Below, one piece after another: positions 13,967 to 62,340 of a stretch of 64,000 nucleotides of DNA. Numbering within the stretch: the first letter of the stretch is position 1; each line of letters opens with the position of its first letter. A program made the translations under genes and the position numbers. Source of the stretch: Cyanophora paradoxa CCMP329 (taxonomy: Eukaryota; Plantae; Glaucophyta); contig QPMI01000507.1 in assembly GCA_004431415.1 (NCBI GenBank), positions 62,001-126,000 of the forward strand, given 5' to 3'. Under the pieces are notes generated by a model. That model was given only the letters and a program-made list of their open reading frames with translations, made no database searches and was not told the DNA's origin.

Positions 13967-14244
13967 TGCGCTGCAGCGGAAGTGCGTGCCGCGGCTGGCC
14001 GCGGTCAAGTATGAGCTCAAGCTCGAGTTGGCGCAAGCTTAAGTTGGCGCCGGCAGTTACCAGGTTCAGCACTGCGGCTGAGAGCGCGCCTTCTTCACAG
14101 CTCACGGACACGTGAGCATGAGCATGCGCTCAGTCCTGATCATGATCAGCTGCCCCGACCTCCGTGTACCCTGTCGCAGCTGCAGTTGCACAGCAGCGAC
14201 TTCTTCACCCAGCTTTCCTCTTGGCCTGCTGGGCCCGCGTCGGG

Positions 14245-16461
14245 ATGGAGGAGCGCTTCGTGATGTCTGCAGGTCCGCGAAGTGTTGCGAACGCGTCAGC
14301 GCAGGCGACAAAGCTGAGGTGAACGCGCAGACTTGTACGACCGGCTCCGGGAGTACGCGCACAGGAGCGGCGAGCGGACGCTCGAGGACGCGGTCGCATC
14401 GCTGCTGGACGCAGCTGCGGGCACGGCGCCCGCGGCATCGTGCTCGGAGGGGAGCGCAACCGCGGCCGCCTCTGGACCTGGCGCCGGCAAGCGAAGGAGG
14501 ACAGACCCGCCGCCGAGCGCTAGCTCGCAACAGGAGACGGAGACTGCAGCATCGGGAGAGCCTGAAGCCGAATTGGCACCGATCGATCAGCTGCCGGATG
14601 ACATTCTCTCGGTCATTTTCGAGCGCCTGGGCCTGCAGGCCGCGGCCGCCGCGCGTGCCGTCTGCCGCCGCTGGCGGGACGCAGCCGCGGCGGTCCTCTG
14701 GCGCCGGCTCGACGTCAAGCTGTCCCCGGAGCGCGCGGACGAGCTGGCGGGCCCCTTGCTCGGCGGCCAGGGCGTGGACTGGCGTTGGCCAGACTACTCC
14801 GCGCGTGCGGAGATCATGTGGTGTCTCGCGGCTCGGTGCCATGAGGGTGATTCCCGCACTGGCGGGCGGTGGATCCGCATCGCCCCCGGCGCGTCGCTGA
14901 GCCTTGAGATCACGCCCCCTACGGACGATGCTTACAGCGAAGCGTGGCGCTCCACGCTCTCCCTCCTCACGGCGTTCTCGGCCGCGGCCGGCGCCGCGAG
15001 CGGCGGCGGCGGGGGCCTGGGCGAGGTCGACGTGGACTGCTCGTGCGCCCCGTACTGCTGCCTCGCGGACCTTCTGGACGCCCTTGCCCCGCCCGGTGCC
15101 GCGGTCTGCCCCTCGCTCCGCAGCCTCGCGCTGCGGGGCGGCGAGTCCTGCGACCCCGACTGCTCTTTCTTCTACCTCGGGGTCGACCCGGTCCTCCGGC
15201 CCTTGCTCTTCCCGAACCTCGAGAGCCTCTCCTGCAGAGCCCTCTGCTGCTTCCCCGGCCGGCCCGACGCGCAGGCCCTCGCCCGCTGCCTCCCGCGCCT
15301 CAGGCGGGTGCGCAGCCTTCGCCCCGTGCGGCCGCCAAGCATCTAGATCTCGAGCTCACTCCGGGCCGCAGCTGGAGGTGGAGTACGACGGCGAGAAGAC
15401 CGACATAGGCGGCGCTGCGGCCGTCTTCCCCGCGCTCGAGTTCTTGAAGGCGACGGACGTGGGTAACGAGCTGGCGGACGCGGCGACCCTGCTCGAGGAC
15501 CTCGTCTCCGGCCCCGCGGGCGCCACTCTCACGGAGTGCGCCCGCCCCTCCGCCCCCGCCCTGCCCCCGCCCGCCCTGCGCCCCGCCGGCGTCTGACCGC
15601 GCGGGGCGCAGGCTCGTGCTGGAGTGGGCCGAGGGCTCGGCGGAGCTCACTTCGGAGGCCCTGCGCGCCCTCGAACGCTTCCCCGCCCTCCAGCGCATCC
15701 AGGCGGACCCCTACTTGATAGTCCGCCCGCCCCCCTCCCCGCCCCCGACTCGTCCCGGCCCCGCCACCCTGACGGCCGCCCACGCGCGCGCGCCTCAGGT
15801 CTTCTCGGACGTTGGTGGCCATGAACTGGCGGCACTGGGCTCCCTCCCGGCGCTGAAGAGCCTCGAGTCGCTCCACCTTTGCGAAGAGGAGGGCCTCGCC
15901 GCCCGCCTGACCGGCCTCGCCACCGCCCTCGAGCGCTCTTCCTCGCTGGCCGAGCTCCAGCTGCGTATCGGTGCGCTTCGCCCTGCCTTTTGTCCCGCTA
16001 CGCCCGTTCACCTCGCCTCAGGCACGGCGCCGCCTCGGGAGGCGCTGCCGGCGCTGGCGCGGCTGGCCGGGGCGGCGCGCGGGGGCCTCTCCCTCGAGCT
16101 CGAGGTCGACCTGGCGCAGTCGGCGGGCGGCCTGGCGGAGGTGGCGGCGGCGCTCGCGCCCGCCCCGCCCCGCCGCCTCGCTCTCCAGGGCGACGTCGAC
16201 GGGACAGCCCTCCAGGACGGCCGCCTCGCCCGCCTCTCCGCGTTCGCCGCCTGCTCCCTCGAGCCCATCGAGGTCCGCCCCGGGCCCGACCCCGGCCCCG
16301 CGCGCTGCCCCCGGCGCGGCTAAGGGCGGCGGCAGGTGCGCCTGAAGGACGACGTGCTTGAGCCGCGCAAGACAGCGTGGGAGGCGGCGGCGAAGGCGTT
16401 GAGGGGGGCCCTCCCCTCGGTACGCATCGTGAGGCAGGTGCAGGCGGGCGAGCAGCCGTAG
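14245..16461 (+). CDS. RHH-like / NLS / F-box / LRR-like protein, family copy 1
   Basis: Exon 1 (14245-14272) and a 58-nt GT-AG intron (14273-14330) give MEERFVMSADLYDRLREYAHRSGERTLEDAVASLLD. Then KRRR, the F-box IDQLPDDILSVIFERLGLQAAAAARAVCRRWRD, and LRR-like PSLRSLAL, PNLESLS, PALKSLESLHL repeats. Confidence 0.8.
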
Positions 16462-20800: not shown

Positions 20801-23078
20801 TCATATGAGCTTGCAGTGCTGCCTGACGAGGCGGGCCGTGGGGAGGGCGCGGGCCACGGCCTCCCGCACGGCGCCCCACCGGCCCTCCAGCCTCCAGATC
20901 GGCATGGACACGTTCCTCACGTTCAAGTGGACCTGCGAGCACCCTCAATGCAAGCCGCGCCGAGGGCGGCGCCCCGCTCGGCCCGGGCCCGGGATGGATG
21001 CGGAGGCGGACCGCGACGTCCCCCGTGGAGCAGCCGGCGAAGGCGGAGAGGCCCTCCAGGCGGCTCTGGTTTCCCTCGACGTCCTCGTCGAACAGGACAA
21101 CACGGAGGGCGAGGCTGCGGGGCGGGGCGCCCACCAGCGCCGCAGCGACCTCCGCGTATCTCGCGACTTTGTAGCCTACATCGATTTGGAGGGAGAGGCG
21201 CCCCCGGGCCGCGCTGGTCAGCCGCGCCAGCGCCGGGAGCGCCTCCTGAGGCGGCGCCGTGTCTGTCGCGCCCTAAGGCTAAAAAGCACACCGTACAAGC
21301 AGGAACAAGCAGAAACAAGTAGCGCACCGATAAGAAGCTGGAGGTCGGTCAGCGACGACGAGCGCTCAAAGGCGACCGCGAGGCCGTTCAAGCGAGCGGA
21401 GAGGCCTTGCTGATAATTATTGAGGCTGAGCGGCCCCAGGCTCTTGAGGGCCCGGATGGAGCCCAGCGCCGCCAGATCAGCCTCGCCCACGCTTGAGCAG
21501 AGCTGTGGAGCAAGGCTGTCGGGGCAGGCGGAGGCGGGTTCGGGGATGGACAGGTCGATCGGCAGGGGCGGACCTCGAACGAGGGAGTTGCCTGGAGTCG
21601 CTGGAGGGCGGGAAAGCGGTCGAGGGCGCGCAGGGTTGGGAGGGCGAGGTCTGGCAGTCGCGAAATCGTCGACCAGTCCAGCACGAGCCTGAGCCCCGCG
21701 CGGTCAACCAGCCGCGGGCGCCGATGCGGACGAAAGCCTCCGCGAGGAGGGGTACGCACTCCTTGAGGGACAGGGCGGCGGGGCCGGAGGCGAGGGCCTC
21801 GATCAGAGAATCTGGGCTTTCGAGCCATTGCACCGAGCCGTTCATCGCCTGGAGGTACTCGAGAGAGGGGAAGACGGCCATAGCCTCGCCAATCTCCTCG
21901 TCTGGATCGCCCTTGTACCGTACCTCCAGCTGCGGAACACGTCGAAGCTGCTCGAGGGCGGTGCGGGCGACGAGGGGAAGGAAAGGCGCACCCGCCTGAG
22001 GCGCGGGAAGCAGCGGGCGAGGGCCTCCGCGTCGGGCCGGCCGGGGAAGCAGCAGAGGGCTCTGCAGGAGAGGCTCTCGAGGTTCGGGAAGAGCAAGGGC
22101 CGGAGGACCGGGTCGACCCCGAGGTAGAAGAAAGAGCAGTCGGGGTCGCAGGACTCTCCGCCCCGCAGCGCGAGGCTGCGGAGCGAGGGGCCGACCGCGG
22201 CGCCCGGCGGTGCGAGGGCGTCCAGAAGGTCCGCGAGGCAGCAGTACGGGGCGCACGAGCAGTCCACGTCGACCTCGCCCAGGCCCCCGCCGCCGGAGCC
22301 GCTCGCCGCGCCGGCGGCAGCCGAGAAGGCTGTGAGGAGGGAGAGAGTGTACCACCACGCTTCGCCGTAACCATCCTCAGTAGTGGGCGTGATCTCAAGG
22401 CGCAGTGACGCGCCGGGAGCGACGCGGATGCGCCGCCCACCCATGCGGGAATCGTCCTCATGGCACCGAGTCGCGAGCCACCTAGTGACCTCCGCGCGCG
22501 CATGCTCAGCGTCATCCAGCCGGCTCCAGTCCAGGCCTTGGCCGCCGAGCAGGAGGCCCGCCAGCTCGTCCGCGCGCTCCGGTTGCAGCTTGACGTCGAG
22601 CCGGCACCAGCGAATCGCTTCGACCGCGTCTCGCCAGCGGCGGCAGACGGCACGCGCGGCGGCGGCGGCCTGCAGGCCCAGGCGCTCAAGAATTCCCGAG
22701 AGAATCGAGTCCGGCAGCTGATCGATCAGTGCCGGTTCGGCTTCAGGCTCTCCCGATCCCGCAGTACTAGTCTCCGTCTCCTGTTGTGAGCTAGCGCTCG
22801 GCGGCGGGTCTGTCCTCCTTCGCTTGCCGGCGCCAGGTCCAGAGGCGGCCGCGGTGGCGCTGCCCTCCGCGACCGATGCGCATGCCACGAGTGCTGTGCC
22901 CGCAGCTGCGTCCAGCAGCGACGCTACCGCGTCCACGAGCGTCCGCTCACCGCTCCTGTGCGCGTACTCCCGGAGCCGGTCGTACAAGCCTGCGCGTTCA
23001 CCTCAGCTTTGTCGCCTGCGCTTACGCGTTCGCAATACTTCGCGCACCTGCAGGCATCTCGAAGCCACGCAACTTCAT
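20801..23078 (-). CDS. RHH-like / NLS / F-box / LRR-like protein, family copy 2
   Basis: Exon 1 and a 58-nt intron (23047-22990) give MKLRGFEMPAGLYDRLREYAHRSGERTLVDAVASLLD. F-box IDQLPDSILSGILERLG...RAVCRRWRD. Same exon layout as copies 1 and 3. Confidence 0.8.
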
Positions 23079-23160: not shown

Positions 23161-23191
23161 AGTGTACCCCAGCGAAGACAAGGGGTACACT
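23161..23191. promoter_or_regulatory. Perfect 10-bp inverted repeat AGTGTACCCC-N11-GGGGTACACT in a divergent promoter
   Basis: Seen directly between the starts of family copy 2 (23078) and Sec14 (23288). Regulatory function is inferred only. Confidence 0.45.
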
Positions 23192-54852: not shown

Positions 54853-55301
54853 CTTCGTGCCTTTCAGCCGCAGCTAAGCTTCCTTGCACTTTTCAGCGCT
54901 CCGATCGCCCCCTAGCTTGTTCCTCGCCGCTGCGCTTTGGTTCCCGCTGCGAGGCAGTACCCCATCAAATTCGCTCAACCGGCCTTACCGGGCTAGCGCG
55001 CATGGATGTGGGCGCACAATCGTCTCAAGACGTCCAAACCGTGTCAGCAAAGGTGCGCGCGCCGAGCCAGCCGCCCGCGTGGGTGCTCGCCCCTCGCCGG
55101 CCGACCGCTGTCCGGCTGGCCGCATACGCGCGCGCCATTCCTTAGTTAATCGTCCTAGCTGCACCGTGACGAAACTCTAAGCACCCTGTTCGGGCACGCA
55201 GGTTGCCGGGCTCGAGCGGCCCACCCGCGCAGAACAGGTTCTTGAAGACATGGGCGGCGAATGCAGCGGCGATCGCTCTGAAGTGATCAGGCATCGTGAG
55301 G

Positions 55302-57182
55302 ATGAAGAGGTTCTCCAATTTTCCAGCCGCGCGCTCCCCCGCCTGCCCGTTTGACGTTGCGACGCACGCGCAGACCGAGTTGGACGACGGCGCCGGCGCG
55401 CTTCCATACGTACCGTCTTGCGCGAGCTTCAAGCGCGTCGACTCGCTGCCCGTGTCGCCGCCCCGCGCCAGCTCGGAGGCGCCCGCACCCGCGGCAGCGC
55501 CGCCGCCGCCGGAGTCGACGTCGAGCGGCCCCTTCGATCTGCTCCCGGACGCGATCGTGTCGCGGATCGTGTATCTGGCGCGGCGCGGGGAAGGGAGCGA
55601 GTGGCTGCTGGAGGCGCGGCGGGCGTGCCGGGCGCTGCGGCGGGCCTGCGAGGAGCCGGCGGCGTGGGCCGTCGTCTCCGTCCTGGAGCCGGCCGACGAC
55701 GCCCTCGCCGAGCTCGCCTCCCTCCCGCCCCGGACGCGCCGCGCCGCCCGCGCGCTCTACGTCGACGGCTCCTCCCTCACCCCGGGGCGCGTCCTCGCCC
55801 TCCGCGCCGCCCTCGGGGCCACCCTCGAGGAGCTCTCCATCGACATCTGGCGGGTGCCCGCCGCCCGCCCCCAGGCAGAGAGCGACCCTGACCCCGGCCT
55901 CGCGCCGGACCGCAGCCGGAGCACGAGGCGCCGTTCGCGGCGCTGCGCGAGCTCCGCCGCTTCCGCGCGCTGCGGCACCTGCGCGTCGCCGCGCCCACGC
56001 ACCGCCTGCGCACGCCGTGCGGGCCCGTCATGCAGGCCTCCCTCGCCGCCCTGGGGAGCCTCCGCGCCCTCCGCTCGCTCGACCTCTCGCCCTTTGCGCT
56101 CACCGCCGCCACGCTGCGCGCCCTCGCGCCCCTCGCCCCGACCCTCCTCTCCCTCGAGGCGACCTGCGGCGCCGAGGGCGGGCCCGGCGAGGCCCGGCCG
56201 ACGCCCTCGAGGCGGTCGCGGGCCTCGCGCGGCTGCGGCGGCTGCGCCTGCGCGTGCGCGACTGCAGCGTGGAGGCCCTCGCCGTGCTGGGCGAGCCCGG
56301 CCCGCCTTCCTCCCCGCCGACGCCTGCCGCCGCCTCGCCGCCCTCTCCGACCTCCGAGGTGCCCCGCCCGCCCCGCCCCGCCCTTGTCCCCGCCCTCGCC
56401 CCGCCCTCACCCTCTCCTCGCAGCGCTACACCTGTCGGGGGTGGCGGCGAGCGCGGCCTTCGTCTCCTCCATGCCCCTCCTGGAGGAGCTCTCCCTCCAC
56501 TGCGACCGCGGCGCCGACCTCGCGCCCCTCGCCTCCCCCTCGGGGCCCGCCCCCCGCCTCCGCACCCTCTGCCTCTCCGCCTTCGACGACGGGCTGACCC
56601 TCCACGCCGCCCTCCCCGCCCTCACCGCCCTCGAGGCGCCCGCCCGCCCTGCCCTGCCCGCCCGCGCCTCCTCCGCCCTGACGCGGGGGCCGGGGGCAGA
56701 GCCTGGTGCTGCGGAGCGGGCGGGAGGCGTTGGAGGGCCTCGGAAACGCCAGCCTGCGCGCCCTCTCCCGCCTCTCCTCCCTCGAGATCTCCGTCCAGGC
56801 CCGCGCCCCCTTGAGCCCGACCTCGCGCCCACGGCTCGCGCTGACGGCGGCCGGCACGCAGGGGGAGGGCGGCCTGGCGCCCGTGCCGGGGGCCCTCCTC
56901 GCCCGCCTCGCCGCCGACGCGCCGCCGCTGCGCTCCCTCACCCTCGCCTCGCCCCTCCCGCCCTCCGCCGCCCCCGCCCTCGCCGCCCTCCAGCCGCCCC
57001 TCCTCCGCCTCTCCTGCTACGCCGTGCGCCCTGCAGCTGTCCACCCCCGCCCGGCGGAGCGGCGCTGGCCCGGCTGACCGGCGTGGGCGCAGGCGTGGCA
57101 GATGGACGCGCACGAGCGGGCCTTCCTGCGCGCATCCCTCCCCCACACGGCCCTCACCTTCGAAGCGCCTCTCTCCCCGTAG
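55302..57182 (+). CDS. F-box / LRR-like protein
   Basis: FDLLPDAIVSRIV...RRACRALRRACEEPAAW F-box. LRR-like repeats LEELSI, LRALRSLDLS, LLEELSL, LRTLCL. Confidence 0.75.
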
Positions 57183-59533: not shown

Positions 59534-60078
59534 AGGCCCCGGCCCCGCCGCCCCGGCCCCGCCGCGCCCGGCGCCGGCGCCCGGCCCCCGTCCTCTGTGC
59601 AGACTTTCATTCCCCTCCCTCTCTCCCCTCTCGCCCCCTTTTCAAAGCTTCGCTTTGCCGCTCGTTTCAAAGCTTCGCTTTGCTTAGTTCATTTGATGAT
59701 CATCATGTGAGTCGAGCATCCGACGTCTCCTGGGTAGGTAGCTGTAGGCTTCAGCGGGAAGCAGTGCGTCACCCTGTATGGCAGAACAGTTAGGCAGGAC
59801 CTGTGTAGAAACCGTATTCATGTCGTCAATACCAAACCAATTCGTCGATTTCGAATTCGAAGCGCAAGCCAGCGATCCGCACCGCGCGCCGCATTGGGAT
59901 GTACATGTGAACATGTACATCCGCGCCGCGCGCCGCATTGGACGGGCGCTGGACAGTGGCTACATGCCGCGCACAGCGACACGTACATGACTAGTACTAG
60001 CTAGCTGCATCCCGCTTTTCGCTGTGTACCCCAGGCTTTTCGCCGCAGCCTTTGCAAACTCCCGCGCGACTCGGCGAG

Positions 60079-62340
60079 ATGGAGGAGCTTGATCATGAGC
60101 GCAGCTTCGTGATGACCGCAGGTCCGCGAAGTGTTGCGAATGCGCCAGCGCAGGCGACAAAGCTGAGGTGAACGCGCAGGCTTGTACGAGCGCCTCCGGG
60201 AGTACGCGCACAGGAGCGGCGAGCGGACGCTCGAGGACGCGGTCGCATCGCTGCTGGACGCAGCTGCGGGCACGGCGCCCGCGGCATCGTGCTCGGAGGG
60301 GAGCGCCACCGCGGCCGGCGCCGTCTCTGCAGCTGGACCTGGCGCCGGCAAGCGAAGGAGGACAGACCCACCGCAGAGCGCTAGCTCACAACAGGAGACG
60401 GAGACTGCAGCAGCGGGAGAGCCTGAAGCCGAACCGGCACTGATCGATCAGCTGCCGGATGACATTCTCTCGGTCATTTTCGAGCGCTTGAGCCTGCAGG
60501 CTGCGGCCGCCGCGCGTGCCGTCTGCCGCCGCTGGCGGGATGTCGTCGATGCGATCGTATGGCGTCGGCTCAACGTCAAGCTGTGTCTAGAGCGCGTGGA
60601 CGAGCTGGCGGGCCTCCTGCTCGGTGCCCAAGGCTTGGACTGGAGCCAGCTGGACGACGCTGCGCGCGAGGAGGTTGTGTGGTGGCTGGCGGGTCGGGGC
60701 CAGGCGGGCGATACCCGCGTTGGCGGGCAGCGGATCCGCGTCGCTCCGGGCGCGTCGCTGCGCCTGCAGCTGGAGGTCACGGCCGCCACGGACGAGGACG
60801 ACAGCGAAGTGTGGCAGTCCACGCTCTTCCTCCTCACGGCGTTCTCGGCCGCGGCCGGCGCCGCGAGCGGCGGTGGCGGGGGCCTGGGCGAGGTCGACGT
60901 GGACTGCTCGTGCGCCCCAGGCGACTGCTTCGCAGATCTCCTCGGCGCCCTCGTGCCGCGGGATGCCGCCATTTGCCCCTCGCTCCGCAGCCTCGCGCTA
61001 CGGGGCCTCGAGTCCTGCGACCCCGACTCGGACTATTCTATCCGCCTCGGAGTGGACCCCGAGTCTGAATTCTGCAGCTTGCCCTTGGTCCTCCCGAACC
61101 TCGAGACCCTCTCCCTCTTCATTCGCTGCAGTTCCTCGGGCCGACCCGCTGCGGAGGCCCTCGCTCGCTGCCTCCCGAACCTCAAGCGGGTGCGCCTTCC
61201 CTTTCAGATGCCTTCTTTGCACGCTTCGCCACTAAGCAACTCAGTTCCAATCCGCAGCTGGAGTTCTTTGCGGACGTGCGCAAGGAGAAAGCCCTTGCAA
61301 TTGGCGAGGCCGCGGCCGCCTTTTCCTCGCTTGAATACATCCTGGCGTACCCCCCGCTCGATCAGCATTTTGAGAATACGGCGCCGCTGCTCGAGGGCCT
61401 CGCCTCCGGCCCTGCCGCCCTCTCCCTCAAAGAGTGCGCATCCGTCCTCGCTGCGGCTTCGGCGCGCACCAATGTTCCGCCGACCGCGTGGCCCAGGCTC
61501 GAGCTGTTCTGCCCGGATCCGCAATTCTCGCCATTGAAAATCTCTGCGCGGGACCTGCGCGCTCTAACACGATTTCCCGCCCTGCTGCGCCTCTCGTCCG
61601 AGTGCCTCGCGGTCCGCGTGCCCCGGCCCGCCTGCCCGTCCCCGACCCCACCTCCGCCCGCCGGCCCTGACAGCCTTGCTCCACAGCCCTGCTCGGGCAT
61701 GGGCGAGGCTGACCTGGCGGCGTTGGGCTCTTTCCCGGCGCTAAAGAGCGTTGGGCTGCTGGCGCTGAGTGAAGAGGAGGCCCTCATCACGCACTTGAAC
61801 GGCCTCACCGCCGCCCTCGAGCGCCCCTCCTCGCTGACCGACCTCAAGCTGTGTATTCGCGCGTCACTCTTCCTGCTTATCATGCTACGTTGCCTCTCGT
61901 CCATTCATATCTGATCGCCTCGCCACAGGCACAGCGCCGCTTCGGGAGGCGCTGCCAGCGCTCGCAAGGCTGGCCGGCGCGGCCCGCGGGCGCCTCTCCC
62001 TCGAGCTGGAGGTCGATCTCGCGCCCGGACGCCCTGCGGAAGTGGCGGCGGCGGTGGCGGCCGCCCCGCCCCGCAGCCTCACCCTCGTCGTCGATCTGTA
62101 CAAGATAGACACGCTGAAAGCGGCCGTCGCTGCGCTAGACGGCCTCTCCGCCTTCGCCGGCTGCTCCGCGGGGAGCATCGAGGTCCGCGTCCTCCCCCGA
62201 GGCGTGCTGCCCTCGACGCGCCCTACGACCTAGGCCTCCCTCAGGTCCGCCTCGAATACTACGGCGATCGCGAGGGTGTGTGGGGCGCCGTGCGGGAGGC
62301 TGTGGCCCGCGCACTCCCCACGGCCCGCCTCGTGGACTGA
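60079..62340 (+). CDS. RHH-like / NLS / F-box / LRR-like protein, family copy 3
   Basis: Exon 1 and a 58-nt intron (60122-60179) give MEELDHERSFVMTAGLYERLREYAHRSGERTLEDAVASLLD. F-box IDQLPDDILSVIFERLS...RAVCRRWRD; ends WGAVREAVARALPTARLVD*. Confidence 0.8.

Follow-up and report, generated by a model that had tools for sequence, protein, structure and literature searches.

A predicted ribbon-helix-helix module at the N-terminus of a Cyanophora paradoxa F-box-LRR subclade, a possible dimerisation clasp

We find that at least six F-box genes of the glaucophyte Cyanophora paradoxa start with a module predicted to fold like the bacterial ribbon-helix-helix (RHH) repressors. Three of these genes lie in the window, the 64,000-nucleotide stretch of DNA analysed here, which belongs to contig tig00020927. 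Our main reading, to which we assign a probability of about one half, is that a subclade of FBXL proteins gained an RHH-fold module that acts as a dimerisation clasp and not as a DNA reader, because the hydrophobic core of the fold is kept and its DNA-reading face is not.

Results

Three genes with a split N-terminal module

Gene A (tig00020927_g15955, P0009) starts at 14245 on the plus strand, gene B (tig00020927_g15958, P0010) at 23078 on the minus strand and gene C (tig00020927_g15972, P0008) at 60079 on the plus strand; all three are represented by EukProt models (EP00741, Cyanophora paradoxa). Exon 1 of gene A (14245..14272) holds the start codon and encodes the short beta-strand predicted for the module, and intron 1 follows at 14273..14330. 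Residues 10-38, which form helices A and B of the RHH-like module in the AF2 model, are encoded at 14331..14416. Further downstream lie the NLS-like basic motif GKRRR (14486..14500), the F-box (14582..14713; Pfam F-box-like, E 5e-12, 45.9 bits against a cut-off of 24.3) and a region assigned to an LRR solenoid from AF2 and Foldseek (14714..16461), closed by the stop codon at 16459-16461. The module of gene B (22904..23078, minus strand) consists of exon 1 at 23078-23048, an intron at 23047-22990 and helices at 22989-22904; the linker with GKRRR, the F-box (22726-22598, Pfam) and the LRR region fill 20801..22903 down to the stop. The module of gene C (60079..60265, plus strand) is likewise divided into exon 1 (60079-60121), an intron (60122-60179) and helices (60180-60265), and the linker with GKRRR, the F-box (60443-60574, Pfam) and the LRR region to the stop occupy 60266..62340.

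In each gene intron 1 is 58 nt long, in phase 1 and bounded by GT..AG, and it brings in an in-frame stop if retained. The frame of exon 2 has a stop just upstream and no ATG ahead of the F-box, which makes a further coding exon upstream necessary. The same exon 1 is present in the public EukProt models g15955, g15958 and g15972. Introns 2-6 of gene A (15308-15371, 15536-15611, 15721-15798, 15971-16021 and 16273-16335) are spliced at GT..AG in RNA contigs from three RNA-type runs, and over these introns the spliced RNA is exactly the 608-aa public model. The gene A RNA contigs begin at 14332, downstream of intron 1, and hold neither exon 1 nor the joint of exons 1 and 2; the DNA-like run X8 spans the intron. 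Intron 1 is supported indirectly, by reading frame, splice consensus, public models and paralogs, with no junction read. An earlier note on this DNA, made from the letters alone, had described a 58-nt intron shared by the three genes and an N-terminal consensus followed by GKRRR and an F-box. Both descriptions agree with what we see in genes A, B and C, the junction of gene A being indirect only.

Two features of the flanking DNA were observed in addition. Between 13995 and 14245 lies a divergent minus-strand gene, whose intron at about 13995-14060 is spliced and whose RNA cover reaches about 14140; the roughly 100 nt from there to the start codon of gene A form a compact bidirectional promoter. 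Upstream of gene C (59875-59945) a perfect 12-bp inverted repeat (59897-59922) lies between two direct repeats of 23 nt that are 44 nt apart.

The proteins are FBXL-type receptors

Genes A, B and C encode FBXL-type SCF substrate receptors. The F-box scores above the Pfam cut-off in all three (PF12937/PF00646), and in the AF2 model it is followed by a confident, repeating strand-helix solenoid with pLDDT mostly 80-95. Foldseek matches this model to MAX2/D3, FBXL2, TIR1, COI1 and Dia2 at E 6e-9 to 6e-7. The LRR-like repeats that had been proposed are thus borne out by structure and not by Pfam, which finds no LRR in the three window genes and matches only one paralog, P0014 (LRR_14, E 1e-6). We infer Skp1 binding of the three products from their family. 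In gene A residues 41-90 form a disordered linker (pLDDT < 50 in AF2) that contains GKRRR. Similar basic motifs (KRRR) are found in the module-less family members P0001, P0003 and P0006, so the NLS-like motif is no part of what is new here.

MAX2/D3, TIR1, COI1, FBXL2 and Dia2 share with the Cyanophora proteins the order of F-box and LRR solenoid, whereas the latter are only 13-17% identical to them, form a species-restricted family and add an N-terminal RHH-like module and a linker. We know of no other FBXL protein with such an addition. The architecture had been put forward as undescribed, and no description of a fusion of an RHH-like module with an F-box-LRR protein was found in the open-access literature.

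Evidence for the RHH fold

The N-terminal module of about 38 amino acids probably has an RHH fold. Its AF2 monomer (pLDDT 82) is extended over residues 1-8 and forms helices at 9-22 and 27-41. When it was compared by VIA with 48,161 PDB chains, the first 36 rows were RHH or TCP structures, as far as they could be identified; the best Z was 5.6, values of 4-6 being modest for a 42-residue model, and unrelated folds appear from Z 3.7 downwards. Plant TCP domains, tied with NikR, take the top Foldseek rows. At the level of sequence, a profile of the six copies gives a gap-free alignment of 38 columns with E. coli NikR and one of 34 columns, with a single gap, with MatP; both outscore every one of 150 shuffles and of 111 background windows, NikR and MatP having been picked as comparators after the fold search. 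Alignments of RelB and PutA to the profile did not beat their shuffles. Two of the three inward strand positions are hydrophobic, F/V and M/L being kept in the NikR register and the first position being E, R or C, and the hydrophobic register of the module is maintained across intron 1. All these lines of evidence read one sequence pattern and are not independent proof of the fold.

Database profiles give a similar picture at lower strength. Pfam RHH_5 matches one of the six copies, P0011 (E 3e-4, 20.9 bits against a cut-off of 26), Arc and MatP_C match more weakly, all under the curated cut-offs, and no Pfam RHH family matches genes A, B or C. The RHH pattern claimed by the earlier note stands as a predicted strand-helix-helix with RHH and TCP matches; a Pfam check of it yields sub-threshold matches only, and no RHH family for the window genes. 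Feature matches in the ESM Atlas are mostly to RHH-type families, all below 0.9, and a structure search of the same resource found nothing. PHROGs gave weak, unnamed families (E 0.004-0.03), PDB sequence searches gave LRR or ribosomal chance matches only and no TCP chain, and NCBIfam gave nothing useful. The RIIa/Dpy-30 docking-dimerisation domain was considered and rejected: it is absent from the Pfam matches, the best 50 VIA rows and 41 Foldseek rows, and neither Pfam nor structure matched the X-type helical dimer. Residues 7-39 of P0009 recurrently and weakly match the C-terminus of Pfam DUF6084 (E 0.004-0.009), a segment that may itself be RHH-like and unannotated.

With NikR, the MatP C-terminal domain, the MazE9, VapB and TacA antitoxins, Arc and CopG the Cyanophora module has in common the strand-helix-helix order, an L..A...G ending of helix A and a hydrophobic helix B, and its turn has the length of that of NikR. 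Unlike the prokaryotic RHH regulators, it has two and not three inward hydrophobic strand positions, is split by a spliceosomal intron and is fused to an F-box.

Relation to plant TCP domains

According to a review, eukaryotes lack RHH domains almost entirely (PMC5569661). In plants, however, TCP is an established RHH-like fold (PMC9841405; bioRxiv 2022.11.22.517060), which has been reported from Phragmoplastophyta alone and lacks a known ancestor (PMC9480096). The premise that RHH domains are essentially prokaryotic or viral does not hold, since plant TCP domains share the fold and also provide the top Foldseek rows for the module. OsPCF6 (5zkt) and AtTCP10/15 (7vp1-7vp7) match it at TM 0.7-0.78 by query, with a common short strand and a 14-residue helix 1. 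In contrast to TCP domains, the module has no basic region, beta-hairpin, DRH loop or RVR/RIR arginine pair; by the definition of TCP (PMC9841405) the DRH loop and RVR/RIR motif are absent, only 3-9 residues preceding the strand of the module. Pfam TCP matched none of the six copies at E up to 10. On profile and motif, TCP membership is rejected. The longer G-x-x-T turn is no pointer to TCP, because NikR has the same turn.

Distribution and history

The queries spanning the strand were the public protein records P0008-P0012 and P0014, and exon 2 of the window genes was searched separately. When 1.84 billion representatives were searched exhaustively with HMMER, the module was found beyond genes A, B and C only in P0011, P0012 and P0014, all of them C. 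paradoxa F-box-LRR proteins on other contigs. P0013 and P0015 were rejected as carriers, being repeat-driven false positives. In a tree built from the F-box-LRR portion of 13 proteins of the family, the six module-bearing proteins and P0001 form one clade (support 100/99). The N-terminus of P0001 looks like a deleted or mis-modelled module, and this seventh clade member seems to have lost it. The simplest history would be one gain within a lineage-specific F-box-LRR expansion. Rather than a broad class of adaptors, we find a small single-species subfamily of six proteins in one clade.

The public model of P0012 (tig00020629_g12348) ends in a TrmA-like tRNA methyltransferase domain (residues 606-858) and probably represents two genes merged by annotation. 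An ORF at 55296-56594 has a weak F-box-like match (Pfam E 0.13) and is possibly a more distant F-box gene that lacks the module.

Recruitment from a prokaryotic or viral RHH protein had been suggested. Searches for a donor came up blank in prokaryotic genomes, plasmids, phages, viral contigs and metagenomes, and the six-sequence profile found none in a set of 5.8 billion proteins; the profile is shallow, and these blank searches leave room for distant relatives. No relative of the module turned up in the viral contigs, prokaryotic genomes and phages searched. A plasmid match was discarded as chance, lying antisense to a hydrolase gene, and the sole metagenome locus (L001) proved to be an unrelated bacterial ORF, matched in its C-terminal tail.

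Discussion

Does the module do anything? It could be an incidental or decaying passenger: a piece resembling RHH, or an amphipathic helical hairpin that arose by convergence, would have been captured once at the start of a single F-box gene (its 5' end) and spread by duplication and gene conversion, and would have no function today. The module has been found only in a single clade of a single species. Among A, B and C intron 1 differs at 2-5 of 58 nt and the module exon at 2-6 of 90 nt. Because the intron is equally conserved, we do not take conservation of the module among these three as a sign of selection; their near-identity is the product of recent homogenisation. The three genes are also a mosaic: their 5' ends resemble each other more than their LRR regions do, and 15020-15310 of A is almost identical to 22270-21985 of B; this pattern suggests gene conversion. 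Helix-breaking prolines in two of the six copies (P0012 and P0014), together with the apparent deletion in P0001, indicate that the module is dispensable in some genes. Against a passenger, the helices remain gap-free at 63-70% identity between distant paralogs that are about 60% identical, while the adjoining linker (29-43% identity) is full of indels. Moreover, the hydrophobic register is kept across an intron, and the match is specific to RHH and not to generic helical hairpins. Taken together, we regard the absence of function as unlikely, though of the alternatives it survives best.

A second alternative, which we hold to be rather improbable, is that the module binds chromatin sites, possibly its own promoters, and SCF ubiquitylates the proteins nearby. 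In its favour, RHH and TCP are folds that bind DNA, and the proteins carry an NLS-like motif. Moreover, the 8-mer GTGTACCC is found five times in the window, where 0.43 copies are expected; four of the five lie within about 110 nt upstream of the start codons of A, B and C (sites at 14164-14171, 23161-23191 and 60024-60031), and ahead of gene B it is arranged as a perfect inverted repeat of 10 bp with 11 nt between the arms. The 8-mer is operator-like, but may have been inherited with the duplicated 5' regions. The residues of the module argue against a DNA tether. In RHH proteins the outward strand positions read bases, and the serine that starts helix B contacts phosphate; helix-2 backbone contacts are stated for the RHH-like TCP fold (PMC9841405). 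At the positions that match R3, T5 and T7 of NikR, five copies read E-R-V, E-S-V, L-G-E, E-C-S and A-C-V; where NikR and MatP start helix B with a serine the module has E, V or A, and the net charge of the module is 0 to -5. DNA binding, and with it the tethering mechanism proposed by the earlier note among others, is disfavoured because the strand face is variable and non-basic, the helix-B serine is lost and the charge is neutral to acidic. There is likewise no room for the basic DRH loop of TCP domains. We consider it about as improbable that the module is a functional eukaryotic RHH domain outside streptophytes, be it a second capture or a relative of the TCP core, through which SCF directly recognises DNA or RHH/TCP-like factors.

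Least probable is a bait that forms a mixed RHH dimer with a host, viral or bacterial RHH- or TCP-like factor and delivers it for degradation: RHH assembles by strand and helix pairing, a DNA-blind copy could conceivably be a dominant-negative trap, and among viral structures small phage proteins come nearest, some of them under the names RHH or NikA (all E > 0.3), but no supporting target was found, no stand-alone relative turned up in the Cyanophora, viral, plasmid, prokaryotic and metagenomic sequences searched, and the LRR domain already supplies a substrate-binding surface.

The module is more likely to pair the adaptors with each other than to bind DNA. RHH folds are intertwined dimers, and because of this the module would pair two F-box proteins. 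In the dimerisation-clasp reading, a Cyanophora-specific FBXL family would have expanded and one subclade would have gained the N-terminal RHH-fold module, which could join homodimers or, the helices being near-identical, paralog heterodimers. Thanks to the flexible linker of 50 residues, two Skp1-Cul1 arms and two LRR domains could work on a single substrate; alternatively, the paired SCF arms and LRR domains might act on each other. Such a clasp would be analogous to the D-domain of Fbw7/Cdc4 and beta-TrCP, which like the module is small and N-terminal to the F-box, SCF dimerisation by the module being a proposed analogy. The D-domain is all-helical, adjoins the F-box and is found in proteins with WD40 repeats, whereas the RHH fold of Cyanophora lies about 50 residues upstream of the F-box in proteins with LRRs, and no homology between the two was found. 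Functional F-box dimers have a precedent in the D-domain of Fbw7 (PMC3861666).

The scope of these findings is six genes of one species, some of them degenerate, and the function is inferred. If the module is what it appears to be, it would be the second occurrence of RHH in eukaryotes, in a glaucophyte and split by an intron, plant TCP being the known exception so far. If it proved to be a functional RHH domain outside streptophytes, the origin of TCP would become more tractable, and the module would represent a new means of directing ubiquitylation to targets. If the clasp reading is true, the RHH fold can be domesticated as a protein-pairing clasp, and the Cyanophora proteins would represent a new solution to SCF dimerisation, in which paralogous receptors could combine.
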